A stretch of DNA of 63,443 nucleotides, counting the filler, from Choristocarpus tenellus KU-1152 (Eukaryota > Protista > Phaeophyceae): assembly GCA_964200185.2 (NCBI GenBank). It is 10 parts of 10 records of this genome, joined end to end, with 100 filler letters (N's around TTAATTAATTAA, not from the genome) between each part and the next. Parts side by side here need not be neighbours in the genome. Positions count along the whole stretch, not along the records: positions 37,600 to 50,738 come from CAXNAD020001574.1; 9 more parts are not named here. One strand, 5' to 3'. This document shows positions 36,436-50,970 of this stretch, piece by piece; the stretch's first letter is position 1, and the number at the start of each line of letters is the position of its first letter. The position numbers and the translations under genes were made by a program. The notes under the pieces were generated by a model that searched no databases, was not told where the DNA came from, and was given only the letters and a program-made list of their open reading frames with translations.

Positions 36436-38184
36436 CCCCTCAGACGCTGTTCCCTGTCTGGTCACCGAACATTGACACCTTGTGACAGTACCTATAGTCC
36501 TGCACCATAGTGCATTGTAAGTTGGTGTCTTTTTCACACCGTCTTTTTTCTGACATGTTGTGACACACACAGACATACACCAGACAAGCAACAGCATGGG
36601 AATGCAACTGCAGGGACTGAGAGCACAATTTGAAACATAGTGTGTCCATCCCTTTCCTTTACCACTCCTCATATTAGGCAAGTGCTTCAGAACCACTTCA
36701 ACCTTTCACAATGAACCCTTCTTGGAACATTAGAAGATAGTGGCAGAGAAATCACCTTATTACATCATGTCTTGGTGTACCCCTCCACCCCCACCCCCCC
36801 TGAACTGATCAGAATTCCCCTTGCGATCCCCAGCTCCCCACTCAGGTACAACGGTAACTAAATACACCATCAGGAGGAGCATATACACACCATCCACCAG
36901 CAAATGAACCTGAAACACCTTACTAGCTTAATAGGCTACACTCCTCATTATCTCACAGAATGAAGTGGGGCAACCTCTTGGGCAGTCTAGATGAGATGAA
37001 TACTCTCTTTGTTCTTCTCATCCACCCCTTCCATTAAGCCCACCTAGCAGTACACAATCTCGCTCACATCCACACGCCATCCCCCCACCCCTATCCCCTG
37101 CTTCTCCCACACCTGGGACTTACAGGCAGACAAGATGCTCCCGCCTCAGCAGAATACCAAAATCCATTCCATCCTCTAGAATCCTCACTAAGACTACACC
37201 AAATCCCTAGCCACCCCAAATACCTCTTCTCTTTCCACAGACAAAAGGTGATAAGAAAATAACTCTCTTGATATCAATAACAAAAACACAACAAAAAGTT
37301 TCAATTTTCCAAAAGGCAAACAAAGGACTCTTGAGTTCACTTGCCCATTCCCAACATATAGTCCAGAGTCCCATCGACTAGAACATCATTCCTTCCCCGC
37401 CCTGGTTCTCCCTCAACAATCTCCCAACACACTACAAATGCCCCTCCCCTCCCCTCCCCTCCCCTCCCCCCACCACATCTAGGCACCTATTGACCTCCCN
37501 NNNNNNNNNNNNNNNNNNNNNNNNNNNNNNNNNNNNNNNNNNNTTAATTAATTAANNNNNNNNNNNNNNNNNNNNNNNNNNNNNNNNNNNNNNNNNNNNG
37601 TGATTTGGTTCCATACGTTGGATTGATAATGAAAGTGCACTTTTCCTGGTTTTGGTCCAAATGGACACTCTGGTGTAGACTCCTCCCCCCCCCCAGATAC
37701 TGTGGGTCATACGGTTGAAAGAAAGGTAATGCACCAGAACTTGCATGCATGAGGTACGCCATCCAAGAATTGTACCATTGATCCTTATATCTGATTATGT
37801 CGTTTGATGCACGATCCAAGCAAAATGATATATATTTGTGTATGTGTAATATTTGTGTGTGCATACATTTATCCAATCTACACGATTTTTATATATTGTA
37901 GGTCTGAATTCTCCATGTAGAATACAAATACTTTTCAACCCTACCCATGTATTGCTGATAACATTGAATTGTGATCCCACATTGCCTTGGAGTGAGTTCA
38001 CATGATGGCTCCAGTTATTAGCAGGAACCCAATGGCACAAAACAATTTGAGAAGAAACCAAATCCGTTCATGCATAGTGTGTAGGTCGCATGCAATGTTG
38101 TGCACGGAAAGGCAGGGGTCTCTGCTCCCTGCTGCTCTCTGCTGACTAGATTGAACATGGACGACAACCTTGTAAGTCACTCAC

Positions 38185-41100
38185 CCCATCATAAACATCT
38201 TCTGCGACAAGTTGCATTTGTCCCTGTCCTTCAATTATTCCATCCTTGAAGCCTCCCTCATACTGCAGCACAAGTGCCTGTTGTAGAATCAGGGGAAATA
38301 TTGGACGTAGGATTACGTCAAGAGTCACTTTCGTCAATTACTCCTAAAATTATAATTGTACCCCTTGTCCAGCAGTGCAAGTCAACGGCGAGTAGTTCAC
38401 CTTCTTGAAAATTCCTCACAATTATTTATCACAAAAACCTCAAAGATGGCTTACCAAAAGGATCACCACTGCTCCAGTATATAGATGTCAAATCAACACA
38501 TAATGGGCACCTAGAAATCCCTCGGCAGCAACATCTATAATAATTACGGTTTTGCCCTGACATTGGAACCGTTTTTCCTTTGAGCAGAACCAATACTATT
38601 ACATTGTTCACATCTGCTACAAAATGATACCTATGGGACAACCCACCTACTCCTATGCAGCTTAAGTATGATCAATTACGACAAAGCATGTCTAGAATAG
38701 TCAGCGTCCAGTCACAATCGATCCCAATCCACTACAATGAAGAAAAGGTTTCCGACAAACCTTAGGTATACCGTCAGGACTGGTACAACTTGCTCATGCA
38801 GAAAGAGAGATAAGCCTTCCAAACATCGATTTGTATTTTTTGTACATATTCCTTGGAGGTATGGTAGACTAAGCTAGTACCATGTTCTGAAATTCTATCA
38901 TCTTGAATACAGTATGTATGAAGGACATATTTCCCTACTTATGAACTGCACACAGGGTCAAAGTATCTAGGGGGGGGGGTGGCGGCTGTCCATTTGGGGT
39001 CAATTTTTTCATGTCGTGATTTTTGGGTGATTTGGTTGCATCGTCGAATGGATAATGTAGATATACTTTTCCTGATTTTGTCCCAAATGGACACCCTGGT
39101 GTAGACTCCTCCCCCCCCCCCCCCTCAAGTGTTTCCGCCGCTGTAGATATACTTTATNNNNNNNNNNTTTGTTTCTTCGTCGAAAGGATAATGTAGATTT
39201 TTTTTTCCTTTTTTTTGCCCAAAGGGGCCCCCCGGGGTGGCCCCCCCCCCCCCCCCCCCTCTAGATACTTTGGGTCATGCAATTCATTCCGAGGCATTTG
39301 GGTTGACAATTGATTGATGCCTCTAAAGGATATGTATGTGTAAGTGGAGGTAGAAGCTATCCACTAACCAAGACTCGCATAGCATGCACCAATACTCTAC
39401 AATCCAACAACACACATTTGTTTCGGGATTAATTATAATTGGAGTGAAATTATCTTAGAGGGTACGAGTTTCGCCCTGTTTGTCCATTTGGGGCTTTGTT
39501 TCCCACTTTTTTTTTACATTTTGCTACTCCGAAATGGTTCAGAGGAGGTGAAAATGTGTAAGTTATGAAAAGGTGTGCCTGGAACAAGGATATTGACACC
39601 TCCTCAAACAAAACATTACATCAAAATTGCAACATTGGATTTTGGCTCCCAAATGGACGCGGCTCTACCCTCTAAGATACTTTGACTCATTGATTATATT
39701 GACAAACCTTTGGCACATAGGTATGTATAGGGGTGCATGGCATACTACAAGTAGTAACTGTTCCAGTTTCTCCAGTACTGAATTTCCTTCAGAGAGCGGA
39801 CTCTAATTATGGGTGGCAAACCTATCCAACAAACTGTGGAAGAGGCTTAGCAGTTTGAGACACCACAAAAAGTAATCACATACGGGAAACGTGGAGTTTT
39901 CAATACACAAAATGGATCCCTAAGTGTGCATGTAAAAGATTAAAGAACCTACTATGTACTCATAGACATACAATGCAGTACAACCACCTACACACACACC
40001 TCTGGCTTGTCATAGACCACCAGGTACCCTTTCCATTGTGGGACCATATCCCCTGGGGCAGCACTGATGGGCCTCACAGCGTATCCTGAGAATGGACCCA
40101 GCTCAGTGTCTATGGATGAAACTCCATGGAGCGCCAGTGCCTCTCGGTATAGGGGAGTAAGGCTATCCAGATATGACTGCACCTTAGCATTTCCCACCTC
40201 CTATATAAGAGCAGGGATTGAGGTTCAGTTGGTGATCCATACCAAGGTGAAGGATTCTTGTTGTTGAATTGATACTGATGTCGAAATATTTGGGCGAATT
40301 GTCTGAGCTTTCACCACCCAGTACAAAAGAAAGGGGGTCTGCTTAAACACTTTCGAGTTGCTTCTCTAGTATATGGACCTAAATATCTAGGTCTATTGAT
40401 GTGTACTCCAAACTTAGGTTGAGTCACTTAATCAAATGTAGAGCTCCATGTGGTAGTAATTGCTCCTAAGGGACCCCTTTCACCAAATTTACGGTTAGAA
40501 TATACCTTTGAGTATTCCTGAAATAACATGAACTCTTTGCGAAATAGCGAAGAGTGTAATCGTGGCATACCTTTGGAATGCTACAGGTAAGGCACACAAA
40601 ATGGGTAGGAAAGTTATGTCAGTTATTGCTTTATGGTGGTACAGCATCATGTAAGATAGAAGACACAGAAAAATACACTTGGGGACATTGTGGGGCATTG
40701 AATATGGCATTCAATTCATGACACATGTAGCTAGTAATGCTCACCTTTTTCGGCATAGGAAGCTCAATTAAATTCTGAGTGCCAAATAATCAGCATATAT
40801 AACTGACTACCTGAGAGAGCTGGGTGTATCAGCATAGTTCCAACCAACACGATCGCATAATTCACTCATAAACACGGCTAACATATCAACTCTAAACAAG
40901 ACTCAGCACGGGACACTTGTTTCCTGTTGCACATACCTTTATGGATTTTTTCATGATGAAGTCTGCGCTCTCGTTAAGATATTCCTGCACAACATTCATT
41001 GCATCTAACTCCTGCTTAATACGATTCGCGGCATCCGAGAACACTTGACGGAATTCCTGTGGTGGCTGATACGCTGGATCTGACTCTGGGGTACCCTGAC

Positions 41101-44100
41101 CTTGAATGATGGCATCACAGCGCCGAACAGAGTCTGAGTACAAGAGCAGATACTCATTTGCCTCCCTTAGGGTGAGAAGAAGTCATAATCGAAAAAAATA
41201 CATTCATTTATTGTCAATGTTGTGGAGAGCTCTAGCAGATAGGAGAAAACATACTTTTTAATTCAACAACTAATAGGGAAATTCTGTCCCTCCCTAGCAT
41301 CAATACTTCACATGCAGCATTAGCCTAGTTATGCAATGTATGAGCAAGTACAGATTTCAAGGAGCAGGTGATAGTTCCACCAGTCAGTCCAGTTGCGCTT
41401 TGTTTGCAGGAATTGATCCCCTCCGTACCCTGTGCTCGAGGCTAGAAAAAAGGCAACTGACCTGAGGTTGGCCTGCAAAATTCGTAGACTTATGTTGTTC
41501 AGTAGCATTGGAAATCTTTCCACCGGGAGGGGGCGGACCTGTTTGAAGCGGTGTGGAGTCAGTTAGTGCACAGGAAGATAGCTTCCACACACGTCACTGG
41601 AACAAAGCTATTCTGTATCAATAGCCAAGAATTGTGTACAGGGTAAGATATATTCTCAATCTGAGGTAATCCATATCCTTCGAAACTGTTTCATTTTGAT
41701 CACTCTCTACTGCTATGCCTGCCAACTGAACTCCTATCACAGAGGATGGTCCCACCTGTACACTCTTTCTAGCCATGCTCCATGAAGCCACAAAGCTTCA
41801 GCTGAGTTGCTATTTTTGGCTCTTAATCAATGTAATAGATATATGAAAACCTGCACCCCCACTATCAGCATCAAAATATATAGCCCTCTGAGTATAACTT
41901 ACACTTACATGGGAATTTACCCGCTGTCACATATGCATAAATACACAAACTACATATACACAAAATTGCCGGTGTATATGTCAATATTGATCCTGCAATG
42001 TTTGGTTTTTGGTTAATCAGAGAGGAGGAGGGAGAGAGACAAAGAGGAATGGGTAGAAGTACCATGTCGCAACATTATCTGGGAGTTCCTTCTACCACAC
42101 AATAGGGCTCAAGGTCCCTTTAGGGTTGAACATAGTCAGAGACCAACTCAGGTTAAATTTACTCGTCTAGCAAAAGCCAAAAGGGGGATTACCCAGACAG
42201 AACCACATTTACCTGGAAGCCAACAATAGCCAGCTGCTCGTTGTCATTGACTGTTGGTTGGAATGCTTTAATGCACGCGAGAGCCTCTTCTGGAGATTCA
42301 CATCCCATCTTATCGACGACAGTGTTGCCTGCTACACGCTTTGATAAGCGCACAGAGATCTGCGACTCCTCTTGTTCCTCAAATTCTCCAAAGTGAAAAC
42401 TCTTGCTTATCTGTGGACACCCAAGTGAGCAAGAAAACAACAAGTTATATATGGTTTCTAAAAACACAAGTCAACCCTAACCTGATCCAATTTAAGAAAA
42501 GTCGAGAAATTTGTCCAAATCTAGTCTTAGCAACGTCGCATTATTCTATGACATAGAATGTTTACTAGACAGCAGTTTAGTCTGCCCATTGCATGTGCTC
42601 AACAAGGTGTCCCCCCTGAAGATAACTTCGCCAAAATAGCAGCTTCAGAAGATCATACACTTCACCAGCTTAGAATTATATCATTTTTTACTGAGGCCAT
42701 TGTCCATAACATGAACACTGAGCCAAAATATCTTAGAGGGTAGAGCCGCGTCTAATTGGGAGCCAAAATCCAATGTTGTAATTTCGGTGTAATTTCGGCT
42801 ATCGTTCTTGTTAGGAAGTGTCAATATCCTTGTTCCGTACACACCTTTTCAAAACGTATACATATTACCTCCTCCGAAATATTTTGGAGTAGGAAAATGT
42901 CATAAAAAACCCCGTGGGAAGCCAAGCCTCAAATGGACAAACAGGGTAAACTTGTACCCTCTAAGATACTTTCACTCACTCTAGGGTGCCACCAGACTAA
43001 GAATTGGCATTCGTAAGGTACTCAGGTGCATATGGTACAGCATGGTCCAAACATATACTCCAACACTTCCAAGAAGCACCTAGAGTGCTTCAACAGGAAA
43101 CAAAAGGATAGATGACCGAATAGAAAGAATTTCCCACCTTGAAAAATCCCAAGTTGATGCTTGCTTTTACCTTAACCTCCCACTCTTCCTTTTGGTACAC
43201 AGAATCTGAGTCGTATATGAAATCTATCTCGAGAATGGCTCCATACAGGATCTTATGGATGTAGTAGCCCCCGAGCATTCTCAGCACCTCATTGGAGTTA
43301 GTCAACTGCTTCGCATCTCTGGTAAGGTCGGCATTATACACTGATCAATTCGACGACAAAAGATAGCACAAGAACGGTGGGGATGTTTGTTGGTACAAAA
43401 AAAAAGAGTCGAGGGAATAAGCAAAGGCATCCGTGCCTAAAAAAATTGAGTGCAAAAGCGTGCTTCAGCACGCATTTGGATTTTGACACCCAAATGGACG
43501 CGGCTCTACCCCTCTGAGATAAATTTGTCGCAGTGCAACCATGCGATAAGAGTGGCATTGAGCGTCCATCATGTGGCTGATATCGAGGACAGAGGCGTCT
43601 CACCTGTTTTACTCTTCAATACAACATTTTTTCGGTATCTTAGTATAAATTTTCGCCCACTCGAGTTGTTCACCTGTAACAATTGGAATAATGAGTTCAA
43701 GGGTACAAGATGAGAAGATAATGGAGGTGGGGGGAGAACTGCAGATCAAAAATCTGTCAAAAAAACGTAGGTGAAATGATAAGGCAAACTAGTCTGGACA
43801 ACTTGTCTGTGAAGCTCTACACATTGTAGGGGCCGGTCGCAAGATGTGCTCCAGATAGACTTGAGATCGTGATGACATCCAGCCCAAGGATGAGATTAAA
43901 AATTTTCCCGGACATTCATTTCTGGTTTGGATCACAACGTGTGCCTCATGCATACCTCTTCGAAGCTTCCCGTTGCCTCTCCTTCAATAATCAACACTTT
44001 GGCTGACGCTTCAAAGGAAATGTCTAAGCTTTGCAATACGTCCCTCGAGCTTTGTATCAAGGAGAAGCTCGCTCTGGCCGAAGACTGCTGCTCCTCATGC

Positions 44101-44243
44101 ACCCCGTATTCACTGTCATTATCCACAGCAAAAACTCTGAGAGTGCTAGACCCGTTCAACGCAAACCCATCACCGAGGACAGGCTGATCCTTCTCTCCCG
44201 GAAATGGGAAAGTAGACGGAATGAACAGATCTGTAGATGCCAT
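38185..44243 (-). CDS. Stonustoxin-like MACPF/CDC pore-forming protein with C-terminal MORN-like repeats, paralog A (3' end missing)
   Basis: Exons 44243-43956, 43673-43604, 43340-43138, 42410-42213, 41538-41462, 41165-40937, 40774-40745, 40200-40000 and 38277-38185 are all AG/GT-bounded and join to 1389 nt (463 aa) without stops. Motifs: PVLGDGF; LDISFEASAKVLIIEGEATGSF (TMH1-like); LRMLGGYYIHKILYGAILEIDF (MACPF signature-like); EVKVKASINLGFFKISKSFHF (TMH2-like); VGFQVRPLP; QYEGGFKDGIIEGQGQMQLVAEDVYDG (MORN-like). Confidence 0.8.
38955..39276. mobile_element. TIR MITE (G-tract subfamily) in an intron of paralog A
   Basis: Termini GGGTCAAAGTATCTAGGGG ... CCCTCTAGATACTTTGGGTC, with an internal 10-N gap. 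Confidence 0.8.
39442..39688. mobile_element. TIR MITE (AGAGGG subfamily) in an intron of paralog A
   Basis: Termini GAGTGAAATTATCTTAGAGGG ... CCCTCTAAGATACTTTGACTC, flanked by ATTG on both sides. Homologous to 32299 and 42720. Confidence 0.85.
42720..42977. mobile_element. TIR MITE (AGAGGG subfamily, opposite orientation) in an intron of paralog A
   Basis: Termini GAGCCAAAATATCTTAGAGGG ... CCCTCTAAGATACTTTCACTC, with a 3-bp TSD ACT at 42717-42719 and 42978-42980. Confidence 0.85.
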
Positions 44244-46115
44244 CTATCCCAATATTATTGTGGTGCGATGCCACCTGCAGAAAATACAATATATGGCGGA
44301 CATGTCGTCCGATTGAGCATCTGCTACCCAAACCAGGATCAGAATGTGAAGTCTTTTATGATCAAGATGGTTTAGCGTGTTGCCCACTTTGTCAAGTCCA
44401 CGCTACATTGTGCAATCGACAATCTACGTACCACATATCTCGATAGATCCTGCAACCCCAAAAAGGATCGAGGGTGTGAACAACGATATTCAAGTGATAT
44501 CAGTTAAACGCAGCATCGAGAGAGTTTGTCAACAGGGTGCTGCATAGCCCAACCCACAACATAAGTCCTGTCTATAACAACGACAGCAACTATATATGGT
44601 AGGGGATTCACTGTATCTGCATCATTACGCAAACACGCCAGGCACTCTTGCATGATAGCCGAACCCCCCCACCTCAAATACCCACCCTGCTTGGTCCAAA
44701 GATCGAGGTTTATCCAGATTGTCGTAGAAGCGACTCCCTTTTACCCCCTGCTACAGTGGATGCTTCTGGAACCTGATACTCTTCCCATCCAGTTTAGTGA
44801 AGAGAGGGATAGTAGTAGTAAGATTCACATTCAACAAGGAGCATTGAATATCTATACTTGGTAGCAAATAATTTAGTTCTGATGATCAAATTTTTTTTAG
44901 GAAGGTCACTCACGCTCGAGACAAACAGTTAAACCGGTACGTTTGATATATAATTTTCATTGGTTTCCCCTCTGACACATCTGCAAAATGTCAGAGGGCA
45001 TAATATTAATAATATATGGAGAACCTTCCTTACCATTGGGTTTTGTCTACCACCTATATCAATTCTATCTTAACAGAGGAGTAAGAAATAATGGAAGATA
45101 AACAACGATTGAGAAGATTCTCCCTCTGTTCTATGAAATATCAATTTGAATATAAGAAATTGATAAGTTCAGAATAGTCAAATGTGGTGATTGTCGAGTT
45201 ATGGTAAAGGGTTAAAACTATTAGACATATCTCAAAAGTATCTATAACATCTATACCCTTGTTCTTTGGAAGTCTCGATCCACCAAAAATATTAATCATT
45301 GGAACTTGTCATGTCCTACTTACTACCTAGTAGTTTGCAAGGTTTTTACGAGACCCATATTTCAACCAACAATTTTGATTGCGACTTGTCAATTCAACCT
45401 ATAAACTCGACAATATCTGTAAATGAAAATGCAAGTAACCAAAATCTGAACAAAACCTTGCATGTCCTTCACAAGAACGGAAATTTCCACATCATCTGCT
45501 TACCTTGTCCAAATCACCAACTCATATCAACACTCAACCCTTCCTTCCTCAGCAGGCCCAAAACAGAGTAGTGTGCAATCGGGGTCACCTTCACATCCAC
45601 CAAGTGCACAAAACAGGTACAAATAGAAGAGCAGTTCACATGTTTTGATATCTTTTGTCATTCGTTGGTCATCATGAACGTTATGAGCGAAAGGTTGTCT
45701 ATGAACTCCTTCCTCACTATATCAACAACACAGGGGTGCGCGGGCAGACCTCTCGAAGCCTTTATCGAGCCTCCAATAAAATACACATGTTGTTGACACT
45801 ACACCGACAACAGGATGTCGATGTTCGCATGCCAAACAGCAAATACTCAGACCGACCAGACATGATATCGGATCTTTCACCATTGTCCACGCCCTATACC
45901 CCACTCTCATTTGAACCATTAAATCAATCCCAATGTCCAACTGAAACCAACGCCTATATCGCACCCAACACCTCCGAGCCTATTTTGGTGACCACCTTCG
46001 GTACGCAGTCTCGGTTAAAGTATGTTGCTTGAGTTTTGGGGACTTCAATGACTCAACACGTTCATTCATTCCCGATGTGAAAACCCTCGCACACTGGTAA
46101 ACCAAGCAACAGATC

Positions 46116-49100
46116 ATGTCGGGAGAGCTCTATTACCCACAGGTTCTTGGCGAGCCAACCGTGATGGACAAGACCAACCTTGGGGATGGTTTCTCAGTTC
46201 ATTCCCAGGGACAGGTGCAGAAGGCGCTTATCATTGACATGGGTGATGATGGAAAGCTAACACAAGAGGACTTCCACTACGAGAACCAGGTTACAGGGCA
46301 GAGTTCGTATGCTGTCATCACGAGCTCTGCAGACCGGAGTGAGGCCATGGGCATCAGTGGGGCGGTAAAGCTCAAGTACAAGGTCTTCACAGGCGAAGCT
46401 GCAGGATCGTTCGATAGCAAAGAAGAAACTAGCACGAATTCCATTTCTCTCTTGTACAGGAAGAGTGTCACTTTGAAAACTCTAGCAGGTGAGTGCCGTA
46501 TCTAATTAGATCGCTGTACTTTATCGTGATGTGTTATCTCCATAACAAACACACCTGTTGCGAGTGGGATGCATTGACATCATAGCCAAACCATAGACAA
46601 GAATCGATCGTGTCCTTTGTGTTCCAGTACTGACACCCATCAACTCTGGTCCATTCATTGCAGTGCCTGAGAACATGGAAGGAGTCACAATTTCGAAAGA
46701 AGCAGCCGCGATGAGCGATGCGACGCTTTTGAAGACGCTTGGTGGCTATTATGTCTCCAAGATTATGTCAGTGTGCCTCCTTTCTGGGGGGGTGTTGATT
46801 GGACATTTTGACAAGAACCAACTCTAGCTGTGGGTCTGCAATGTAGGACAGGATTTTCAATATACTACGGCCACATTGTATACCCTTTGTAGTCAGCAAG
46901 AAGAGATGCCTATTTCTCCTATGGCAAGGCTTTTGCATGTCCTACCTTAGGCACTGACATACCCTTTTCCCCTTCTATGCTATGATGAACTTGCACCACC
47001 AACCCTAACTTGGGTCGTTTAAAGATTAATCTCATGGTACAGTTTTGGTCCACGTAAGATATCTTGACCCTTAGTAGAGTACAGACTTGGGCTCGGTGTT
47101 AAACCAAACTCACTCTCCTTTGTAAGTTAGTGTAACCTCACAACCACTTAATTAATAGATTTGTGGGTACTTCTTCTCTACTTACTACTATGCTCTTCTA
47201 CCCACATATATATCTGAAATCTTTTTGGTGGTGTATTTTCCCCCTTGGTTGAATCCCCCTCCCTTCACTGCCCTCTTCTCCTCTATTGACCTGAACAAGC
47301 TCTCCTCCTCTCTGCCCTCTATTCTTCCTCATTCATTCGAGTCCTCTGTACCCTGCACTTCCTCCCTTCTCTTCTTGTCATTTCCTACATTAACATTGTA
47401 GAGGGTGGCAACCATACACAGGTAGTGCATTGATTCTGGTAGAGTGGTTCATACCTCCCTTAGCAATTCTTCAAGGAGCAGTCGTAGTCCCCACCACTTC
47501 AGCATTGCGAAGTGATATATAATGTGTACCTCCGATCACTTCCCTACCCTCCATGGTCCTTTCTTTTGCCTTGGTCTTCCTCCTGCCACCCTTTTGAAAA
47601 GTCCCACATTTCTTGCAGGTTAAAAGACTGACCTTGTACAGAGCAGAATACAATTTATTGACTTGGTGAATACGTGGACTTACTAGATGGGATGATAGTT
47701 GCTGCTTCTAAAACTTGGGGTATCTCATACAGCAAGAATGTGAAACATCTTAGTTCATCTCTCTTGTACTGTCACATCTTTACGACCCCAAATGTCAGGT
47801 ACGGAGCAGCGCTTGAAATAGACTTTACCCTTACCACCTCAGAAACTACTGTCACCAATGATATTAAAGCCAACGCCAAGGTAGCACTGGAGACTGCCAT
47901 GCTTGAAGGCAGTGCTGAGGTTGACGTGGCAATTGATGATTCAGGGAGAACTGCCAATTTCTCTGTGAGCTCCACGATGCGTGTTGCTGGGAGTAATGCT
48001 GTAGCTGCTCTAAACGTGACAGACATGCTGAGTGCTAGAGAAGCAATCGATGCATTCAACCCTAAGGCCGATGACGAAGATCTAGCAGTCGTTGGCTTCC
48101 AGGTTCGGTCACTGCCCATCACCATGTTCCGCCAACTGGCCTCCACCAACTTTGAGGCCCGGAGGTGAGTTTGAGGAGCTTCAACAACTACTTCCTCCCC
48201 TGTATCTTCTTCCTCGCAGAGGGATCATTTTTTTCACCCCACACACTGTAAACAAACTTGAGGCTTATGTGTATGTAAAATTTGTGTGTGTGTGTCACCG
48301 AATGGAGTCAATCCTACATAATGTAACCGCACACTGGTACTTAAGTTTACGCATGTTGGTAGACTCGAACTGGGAGCACCAGTTTAGTAGTCCCATTTGG
48401 GGGTTCGGTGTCATTGTCATCAGATGTATAGATCTTCACGGTATAATGCAAGCTCTAGGACGTTCTGCAGATACTTGAGTATATGCAAGTACAGTTGTTT
48501 TTGAAATAATCCAAACATCCAATGTAAATTGAATATTCTATTCTCCTGTCAATCAACCAATACTAGCATGTACAATTCGCAGGTATGAGGAGAACGTGAA
48601 CGAGGTAGCAGAGCTGTACTCACAAGTTCAGTCAATCAAAGCTCTTAGTAAGTCTGCGGTGGAAATATTTGGCAATGTTGGTGGCGGGGACCCAGCCAGG
48701 CCATGGAAGAACAGGTGAATTGGAAACATTCCCAAGAGAACAGTTCTACCAACTGACATTGTACGATAAAATTCCTTCACGCCATTACTGTGACAAACAC
48801 TTACGGAGTTTGATGGGTATGACAATATTCTCAATTTTTTCCGCAAATAGACAAAAACGGGTGCAGGGTGGTTTCATGCAACACTATGTGATCGAAATTC
48901 CACTCAATCACATCAGCGAAACCTGCCCCTGACCAAAGCTTCCTCCTGTCAGTCCTGTTGATAGTTCAGTGGGAAGGTGGACTATTCTATAACTAGACAA
49001 ACAGTATTTGTAACACAAGTGGGGGAGGGATGTAAACTAGACTGGATATACAACTACTCTATAACAATACGTTGAGATAAGCATATACCTGTATTTTCTA

Positions 49101-50680
49101 GTGGGGGACACAGACCTGCCTGTCCTTGTCCATGTACACTTGTCATGCACTAGACCCAATTCCGTCCACTGACCTCACTTCTACATGTACCACACCAGAG
49201 ACAGCAAAAGATTAGTACTACCCTACCACAACTACCCACCGAGATTGACACTGAACTATTCTACTGAAATTAGCTCATCCTCTCGATATCAGGAGGTATT
49301 CCTTCTCTGCAACTTTGTAGGCTTTAAGATCACATCTCAGTGACACACAGTTTGAAGACCCATATATATAAACAGCACATACTAGTATATATATAACAAT
49401 GTCATTTTGAGCACGAAGTGTAATGGTGTCTTTCGGACTTGCTTCTTCCCTCTCCCCAGGTTCATCAGGGCTGCTGAGGCAGTGATTGCAAAGACGAACG
49501 ACTATGATTTTATCGTAACATATCTCCAGAAGGATGTCGAGGCTATCACGGAAGAGAGCATCATGGTTCGTGCTTTAGGGGTCTTTGTCTTGATGGTATT
49601 CGGCCTGATAATGTGTTGTGCAGTACCATAAACGAGTGGGCAAGCTAAATCATTCAAAACCCTCATACATGTTGCAATACTCCATTAAAATTGGATCATG
49701 GAATTGAAATAGAGAGATGGCGAAGTGGTGATACGGCATGGTTGCAGAGAAACCGTAGACATCAATATCCAAGTATGTTTAGATTTTACCATCAGTATTA
49801 TGCCTCCTACTACTGTACTTACTAACACACCAATTGTTTTTACTGTAAATCCGAGTTTTTCGTAAGACAATGCAGCCTTGGATAAAACTCGAGCCCCCCT
49901 GACATGGCTGGTAGTGACGTAGTTGAGTCAATGTCCCCTAAGAGTATAGGACTTTGGTTGTCCCTTCCCTTTCCCTATTCAGACGTGGTTGACAGAACCC
50001 CGGTTCCAAAATGAGGCAGGAGAGGAGGCCATCAACAACCTTGGCAACCTGGTTCGTGAGGTGAGTAGAGTCTTCAGTTTGTTCAGCACGAGTTGACTGT
50101 CATGTGTGTGTTGCAGGTAACACCATGATTGTGGAGCAGAAGGGATAGTCACAGTAGCTTCTTTTCTTTTATACTTCGACAAATGCATACCAATGACCCA
50201 TCCTTACATGGCAATTATCACTACATTTGATCTCCACGCCCCTCTACTTGGCACTCAATTTTCTTCTTTGCAGGTGGATGGCCTCATCGGCAAGGCATCG
50301 GTGGACCTTCCCCTTGGGGCCTACGATGGTTATGCCTTGAGGGGTGATGACGGCTCACTGATCCCTGAGTACAGGGGGATTCTGGTGAGGTGTAGGGACT
50401 CAATGTAACCAGTTTGAAGTCTTATGCCCAAAGTGATGGTTTGAGCATTATGTGTGTGCTCATGAAATGATTGCTCATTCCATCACAGCAAACTATTCCA
50501 AACTTGGCCTATCCTGTGTTTCTTTCGATGAACAATATACTCAATGCATGATTTCTGACAATGTTTTGGCAGGTATACTATGATGCAGTGGACACTATCA
50601 AATCACTTGACGGCCTGTTTAAGAACGGACTATTCATTGAGGGTACGGTAGTGTATGAGAATGGTGACGTGTACAATGGG
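46116..50680 (+). CDS. Stonustoxin-like MACPF/CDC pore-forming protein with C-terminal MORN-like repeats, paralog B (3' end missing)
   Basis: Exons 46116-46488, 46664-46766, 47799-48164, 48583-48714, 49460-49565, 49983-50060, 50274-50384 and 50573-50680 join in compatible phases to 1377 nt (459 aa) without stops. Motifs: TNLGDGF; MGISGAVKLKYKVFTGEAAGSF; LKTLGGYYVSKIMYGAALEIDF; IKANAKVALETAMLEGSAEVDVAI; VGFQVRSLP; GLFKNGLFIEGTVVYENGDVYNG (MORN-like). Confidence 0.8.
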
Positions 50681-50970
50681 GTGAGTGTGAGTGTTGTTAG
50701 TGATTTGTATGCACCTGGGGGTGAACACATAATCACGTNNNNNNNNNNNNNNNNNNNNNNNNNNNNNNNNNNNNNNNNNNNNTTAATTAATTAANNNNNN
50801 NNNNNNNNNNNNNNNNNNNNNNNNNNNNNNNNNNNNNNGGTGAAAAACGGACGCCGACACCCCCCCCTCCAAGATACTTTGACCCATGGGATTACAGAGA
50901 TAAGGCGGGTATGACGAGGAAAATACAGCAACTGATGAAATGCTCTCTACACAATGCACTGAGAGCTCAC

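Follow-up and report, generated by a model that had tools for sequence, protein, structure and literature searches.

A stretch of DNA of 63,443 nucleotides, filler included (the window), from the brown alga Choristocarpus tenellus holds at positions 37600 to 50738, in reversed orientation, the whole of the public contig CAXNAD020001574.1 (13,139 nt; assembly GCA_964200185.2), which bears its species name on its one named product, "unnamed protein product, partial [Choristocarpus tenellus]". Two intron-rich genes are found on this contig, arranged head-to-head and divergent, with A on the minus strand from an ATG at 44243 and B on the plus strand from an ATG at 46116, and both appear to encode a protein in which an N-terminal domain of the MACPF/CDC type is followed by a helical linker and by the beginning of a C-terminal array of MORN repeats. 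The 1.9-kb spacer between the two ATGs (44244 to 46115, as delimited by the positions of the two start codons) is presumed to be a candidate shared or bidirectional promoter region.

Gene models, public annotation and origin of the contig

The models comprise eight exons in A and seven in B, with GT-AG introns throughout and a consistent running phase, and the genes are colinear paralogues with roughly 30-50% identity per block in tblastx comparisons and a protein identity of about 30-45%. The first exon of B (46116 to 46488, plus strand) was defined by its open reading frame and donor site and by homology to the first exon of L002, the environmental relative described below (E 7e-12); it begins with the start codon, has no signal peptide, carries an LGDGF strand and a first amphipathic stretch resembling TMH1 (the first transmembrane hairpin), and ends in phase 1. 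The same region of A is divided between exon 1 (43956 to 44243, minus strand), which also starts without a signal peptide and matches L002 exon 1 (E 3e-8), and exon 1b (43604 to 43673, minus strand), which in tblastx is the counterpart of the last part of B exon 1, hence an extra intron in A; exon 1 lies within the public product P0001, in which exon 1b is joined to it. The MACPF-type signature is unbroken in A exon 2 (43138 to 43340, minus strand), where it reads LGGYYIHKILYGAILEIDF and where L002 exon 2 is matched at E 6e-5, an exon that also entered the signature-region profile, and B exon 2 (46664 to 46766, plus strand), placed by its splice sites and aligned with A exon 2, ends within it (..LGGYYVSKI-M).

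The reading continues in B exon 3 (47799 to 48164, plus strand) with YGAALEIDF, a second amphipathic (TMH2-like) stretch and VVGFQ, ending in phase 2; this exon matches L002 exon 2 over 118 colinear residues (E 3e-6) and was included in the signature-region profile. Its counterparts in A are exon 3 (42213 to 42410, minus strand), which contains the TMH2-like stretch as far as IVGFQ and is supported by splice sites and a tblastx match to B exon 3, and exon 3b (41462 to 41538, minus strand), which reads VRPLPVERF.., matching the VRSLPITMF of B, and has the phase-2 end seen in B exon 3. A reading of exon 3b in the "STNF" frame was rejected, given that the VRPLPVERF frame matches B, has an AG acceptor and reproduces a public product of 130 residues.

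The helical linker is encoded by A exon 4 (40937 to 41165, minus strand) and B exon 4 (49460 to 49565, plus strand), which match each other in tblastx, the latter also having its splice sites, and by B exon 4b (49983 to 50060, plus strand), which was read from its frame, GT-AG borders and 0/0 phase, is similar to the beginning of A exon 5 on visual comparison only, and is absent from the exon list of an earlier sequence-only reading of this DNA. The linker ends within A exon 5 (40000 to 40200, minus strand), which then enters a junction rich in glycine and aromatic residues that gives no MORN signal, and the same junction forms B exon 5 (50274 to 50384, plus strand; GT-AG, phase 0), which is 50% identical to A over 20 residues in tblastx. 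The last visible exons, A exon 6 (38185 to 38277, minus strand) and B exon 6 (50573 to 50680, plus strand, phase 0), each carry one MORN repeat and the start of the next. The sequence-only reading had placed the C-terminal region of B at 50274-50680, which is spanned by exons 5 and 6 (50274-50384 and 50573-50680), and that of A at 40200-40000 and 38277-38185, and these borders proved exact, with the peptides quoted from A and B present as given.

Each of these last exons is followed by a GT donor, and therefore both genes run off the contig, as had also been proposed earlier. The donor of B after 50680 stands 58 nt before the end of the piece (50738), and the 585 nt downstream of A exon 6 (to 37600) held no MORN-like exon in the frames checked. 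The public gene calls, of 130, 130 and 88 residues, fit the model of gene A exactly in size and position: P0001 joins exons 1, 1b and 2 as modelled here, exons 3b and 4 add up to the 102 codons required by the 130-residue product, and the 88-residue product spans 40170-38185, matching the junction of exons 5 and 6 exactly. Given that A is split into these three partial products and that B is uncalled, the family is effectively unannotated in the public record. A scan of the piece with Rfam returned no match.

The contig may also have come from a contaminating eukaryote rather than from the brown alga, in which case the taxonomic surprise would be an artefact and the gene architecture would stand. 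In line with this, it is a stand-alone contig of 13 kb on which the public annotation fragments A and passes over B, no relative was found in the other genomes of the collection searched, and the GC content is 36-48% along the piece, with a mean of ~43%, brown-algal genomes being more GC-rich. On the other hand, Choristocarpus tenellus is the species under which the record was submitted, the intron-rich genes and dispersed repeats are as in a large nuclear genome, the GC content at third codon positions of the exons is 54%, and no specific contaminant is indicated. Contamination, although the likeliest of the alternatives weighed here, is considered unlikely.

The relative L002 and the domains of the two proteins

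All searches with A, B and L002 were run on single exons or exon profiles. When a profile of the N-terminal exons (B exon 1 with A exons 1/1b) was compared by HMMER with 1.84 billion cluster representatives, two real matches were obtained, namely P0001, which is the contig's own product, and P0002 (E 1.1e-5), which is encoded on L002, a metatranscriptome contig of the JGI that is 2,213 nt long, bears a poly(A) tail and is the sole other relative detected in ~15 billion proteins. Word-index protein searches with L002 exon 2, with the L002 linker and with the whole of exon 3 each recovered only the query itself, and no relative came up among metagenome contigs, scanned twice, or among viral contigs, scanned once.

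L002 has three colinear exons (86-415, 514-1068 and 1217-2065), the first matching B exon 1 and A exon 1 and the second matching B exon 3 and A exon 2, at the E values given above, and they are separated by two introns retained in the contig (416-513, 98 nt, and 1069-1216, 148 nt), both in-phase GT-AG. The interruptions had been considered as non-canonical introns, which was ruled out by listing the in-phase GT-AG pairs; the canonical borders so obtained lengthen exon 2 to a size that matches A and B. Owing to the two retained introns, the metagenome gene caller reports three separate "hypothetical proteins" (164, 193 and 289 residues) in place of the one gene.

The third exon of L002 begins with a helical stretch, followed by a MORN array that scores 61.3 bits in Pfam (E 4.5e-17, in four stretches), matches the crystal structure of MORN1 (6T4R) at E 4e-32, amounts to about six or seven repeats by eye and continues to the stop codon. 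As L002 carries all of these parts colinearly on one polyadenylated contig, and as the phase is continuous in A and B, the comparison argues that the N-terminal domain, the linker and the MORN array belong to one gene and not to two, and the order of a MACPF-like domain, a helical region and MORN repeats, which had been proposed for A and B from their sequence, is borne out by this single detectable relative.

The MORN identity of the tail in the window is derived from exon 6. A profile built from the A and B exon-6 peptides only, compared with solved structures, retrieved 14 chains at E<10, all 14 from MORN-repeat proteins, with FAP207 as the best match in the PDB (E 3.4e-7), and its best full-length match in L002 is the first MORN repeat of that protein. 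The Pfam MORN model (PF02493) gave 17.6 bits on A exon 6 (E 0.0034), under its cut-off of 22.5 bits, and no match on B exon 6 alone, the ~23-residue unit being recognised by the exon-6 profile search and remaining sub-threshold in Pfam on single exons. Because exon 6 matches MORN alone and exon 5 does not score, the visible tail of each gene is one real MORN repeat and the start of a second, after the Gly/aromatic junction. Three MORN-like repeats per gene had been counted in the sequence-only reading; the one in exon 6 stands, whereas the two placed in exon 5 are not supported.

The evidence on the N-terminal domain is concentrated in the signature region. A profile of this region had eight matches in the PDB at E<10, every one of them a member of the MACPF/CDC superfamily, led by the alpha (E 0.0064) and beta (E 0.023) subunits of stonustoxin (SNTX) and including vaginolysin, intermedilysin and thiol-activated cytolysin (E 0.65-0.94), and all of them align on the same strand and the TMH2 region that follows it. 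The second exon of L002, searched alone, likewise has SNTX-beta as its top match in the PDB (E 0.028, colinear over ~100 residues), and the Pfam MACPF model (PF01823) gives it 14.6-14.7 bits, against a cut-off of 21.5, at profile positions 72-161, which cover the signature region. The sequences follow a pattern, G-x-[HY]-Y-x6-G-A, that agrees with the G-[TS]-H-[FY]-x6-G-G signature of MACPF; set against the longer form [YW]-G-[TS]-H-[FY]-x6-G-G, L002 has I-G-L-H-Y-x6-G-A and both A and B have L-G-G-Y-Y-x6-G-A, so that the spacing and the key glycine are kept, the histidine is present in L002 only, and the last glycine is replaced by alanine, as in stonustoxin. Stretches of alternating polarity were also recognised by eye at the expected places of TMH1 and TMH2 in A, B and L002, and the feature neighbours in the ESM-Atlas include clusters of MACPF, Thiol_cytolysin and Stonustoxin_helical (0.92-0.96), although the two nearest clusters (0.97 and 0.96) are without a common Pfam family and recognition was low. 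On this evidence the N-terminal domain is probably a distant member of the MACPF/CDC superfamily, and the signals, weak but consistent, suggest that it is nearest to the stonustoxin (SNTX-like) branch.

A proposed MORN-tailed pore-former and its alternatives

Stonustoxin is likewise not known to have a signal peptide, and it resembles A, B and L002 in several other respects: it is the best solved-structure match (PDB 4WVM) to the signature and TMH2 region, it has the same type of signature ending ("ILYGA"), and it has a helical region after the pore-forming domain, with a beta-rich recognition module far C-terminal. Its domains are MACPF (1-265), FAT-like helical (266-385), thioredoxin (386-517) and PRYSPRY (518-703), the last of which is the first to touch the target surface and is placed comparably to C2 in perforin and domain 4 in the CDCs (PMC8704401). 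The comparison with stonustoxin had been drawn from the sequence at the outset and is apt, since the FAT, thioredoxin and PRYSPRY domains of the toxin stand where A, B and L002 have the linker and the MORN repeats (PMC8704401). The two differ in that the similarity is marginal (E 0.006-0.03), that MORN takes the place of thioredoxin and PRYSPRY, and that stonustoxin is a vertebrate protein whereas the record of A and B is brown-algal; the SNTX-like domain order itself is not seen, as the exons of A, B and L002 all lack a Pfam match to Stonustoxin_helical, thioredoxin or SPRY.

Perforin, MPEG1 and the CDCs share the broader plan in which a MACPF/CDC domain at the N-terminus precedes a beta-rich C-terminal module that finds the target, and the weak CDC matches fall on the same strand motif; unlike A, B and L002, which have no signal peptide and carry MORN, these proteins are either secreted or located in a lumen, and their docking is through C2, MABP or domain 4. 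Among MORN-repeat proteins, MORN1 (6T4R/6T6Q), the junctophilins, RSP1/10 and FAP207 are matched by L002 exon 3 at E 4e-32 to 1e-9 and have the same 23-residue repeat with a Y-x-G-x-[WF]-x-x-G ... G-x-G pattern, whereas the solved MORN proteins among the matches listed have no MACPF-like domain; the array of A, B and L002 is C-terminal, after the helical linker. The sequence-only reading had not recognised this architecture from characterised proteins, and the literature agrees as far as its titles and abstracts go: the matches listed for MACPF together with MORN described no single protein architecture of this kind, no paper was found with both stonustoxin and a MORN repeat, and none on brown algae treated an algal MACPF protein. 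The combination of a MACPF-like domain with MORN appears, within that scope, to be undescribed.

We favour, with a probability of about 0.62, the reading that A and B encode a MACPF/CDC-type N-terminal domain of ~270 residues, a helical linker of ~80-125 residues and a C-terminal MORN array of which the first repeat is visible, and that this array would be the recognition module of a cytosolic pore-former. In MACPF/CDC proteins an ancillary C-terminal domain directs the molecule to its target, and in this protein MORN would replace the module that is C2 in perforin, domain 4 in the CDCs and PRYSPRY in stonustoxin. The array may hold the protein at a membrane or at a protein partner, or may pair protomers as in MORN1 dimers, after which the N-terminal domain is predicted to oligomerise and to form a beta-barrel pore by unfolding its two amphipathic stretches. 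Because the conserved N-termini of A, B and L002 are not hydrophobic, so that no signal peptide is present, and because the cytoplasm is the typical location of MORN proteins, the protein would approach its target from the cytosol, as an executor of cell death or of intracellular defence would do. A docking or assembly role of MORN would be the most economical reading of the comparisons, and the swapped targeting or sensor module suggested in the sequence-only reading can reasonably be inferred from them.

Several results weigh against this reading. The gene models of A and B were read from genomic sequence alone, and what is visible per gene is one MORN repeat and the four residues that open a second (VY[DN]G) before the contig ends, with the rest of the array off the contig. 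Exon 5 was not supported as MORN, as its profile (GAYDGYAL/GPFSGYAV with PEYRGIL/PQWKGYL) found no MORN protein among solved structures, only chance matches, and it has no detectable similarity to the junction of L002. The AlphaFold model of L002 exon 3, made from that one sequence, reached a pLDDT (predicted local distance difference test) of 33.4, the elongated antiparallel beta-hairpin fold of MORN being implied by sequence homology to the solved MORN1, and the structural study of MORN1 casts doubt on lipid binding and lays the emphasis on dimerisation and protein binding (PMC7725318). As regards the N-terminal domain, all MACPF matches fall short of curated and conventional thresholds, including the gathering threshold of Pfam; the signature region was trimmed after a longer profile had given stonustoxin at E 0.12, so that the E of 0.0064 is somewhat optimistic; Pfam returned no MACPF match on the window exons taken one by one or on P0001, single-exon phmmer searches of the PDB returned no match, and the N-terminal exon profile found no stonustoxin there; and the AlphaFold model of L002 exon 2, from a five-row alignment, was unusable (pLDDT 37.7). 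The poor quality of both models is explained by the fact that they were made from exon fragments with almost no alignment depth. Of the MACPF domain claimed earlier, what holds is that stonustoxin and the CDCs are the sole matches of the signature profile in the PDB; all are sub-threshold, and the fold of the superfamily, with a bent central beta-sheet between two helical clusters (TMH1 and TMH2) that refold into hairpins, is not confirmed by AlphaFold and has indirect support from these matches.

The same shortfalls, namely sub-threshold scores for every MACPF and SNTX match, window exons without a Pfam match, an N-terminal profile without stonustoxin, a failed structural model and low recognition in the ESM-Atlas, would be expected if the N-terminal domain were a lineage-specific fold unrelated to MACPF/CDC and the protein a cytoplasmic MORN scaffold with no pore-forming activity. 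Such a fold is rather doubtful, given that four independent weak signals converge on one superfamily and on one structural element, with the eight PDB matches of the signature-region profile confined to MACPF/CDC, the alignment with SNTX-beta colinear for ~100 residues, and the signature motif accompanied by the two stretches of alternating polarity at the places of TMH1 and TMH2.

Brown algae have flagellated zoids. Axonemal or cytoskeletal proteins (FAP207, RSP1/10, MORN3) also account for many of the solved MORN matches of L002 exon 3, which, together with the role of MORN1 repeats as modules of dimerisation and protein binding whose lipid binding is questioned (PMC7725318), would suit a MACPF fold that forms no pore, as in the astrotactins or other non-lytic members of the family, and that MORN anchors or dimerises within a cytoplasmic structure such as a cytoskeletal or flagellar assembly, although this is quite improbable, as the alternating polar and apolar TMH-like pattern kept in A, B and L002, judged by eye only, suggests selection for membrane insertion.

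If the preferred reading of a cytosolic pore-former with MORN as its recognition module is correct, the C-terminal MORN array would constitute a previously undescribed module of aiming or assembly, and the typically cytoplasmic location of MORN would imply a pore-former that acts from inside the cell. The characterised stonustoxin-like members are from vertebrates, so that, if the contig is truly brown-algal, the stonustoxin-like branch would extend beyond them, and the protein would become a candidate executor for brown-algal immunity or cell death, the machinery of which is poorly known. The most specific form of this proposal, a stonustoxin-like pore-former of a brown alga that is cytosolic, docked through MORN on the inner leaflet or on a cytoplasmic partner, and active in cell death or against pathogens as a perforin-fold counterpart of the gasdermins, is speculative and has a low probability. 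Databases also contain hardly anything of the family (two loci among ~15 billion proteins), and annotation pipelines would have missed it.

Introns and dispersed repeats

Three intron positions are common to A and B, in phase 1 after the LK..G strand, in phase 2 before the linker and in phase 0 after SIM/SIK. At other sites the genes differ: the A intron 43674-43955 falls inside the counterpart of B exon 1, the B intron 46767-47798 splits the MACPF-type signature at a place where A has none, the A intron 41539-42212 after VGFQ is absent from B, the linker region of B (49566-50273) is among the sites of intron differences, and the last intron (38278-39999 in A, 50385-50572 in B) is displaced by seven codons. 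These differing positions point to an old duplication followed by intron gain or loss.

The introns of gene A also contain dispersed repeats, at 37606-37697, 39032-39123 and 39168-39259, and as a pair of mutually inverted copies at 39474-39700 and 42708-42946, a family for which no Rfam match was found. An assembly gap of 10 N lies at 39158-39167, inside the last visible intron of A, and adjoins the degraded-looking homopolymer stretch of 39168-39259. The similarity between copies is ~76-87%, and a long homopolymer run of C/G closes some of them, which gives them the appearance of short interspersed nuclear elements (SINEs) or of miniature inverted-repeat transposable elements (MITEs).
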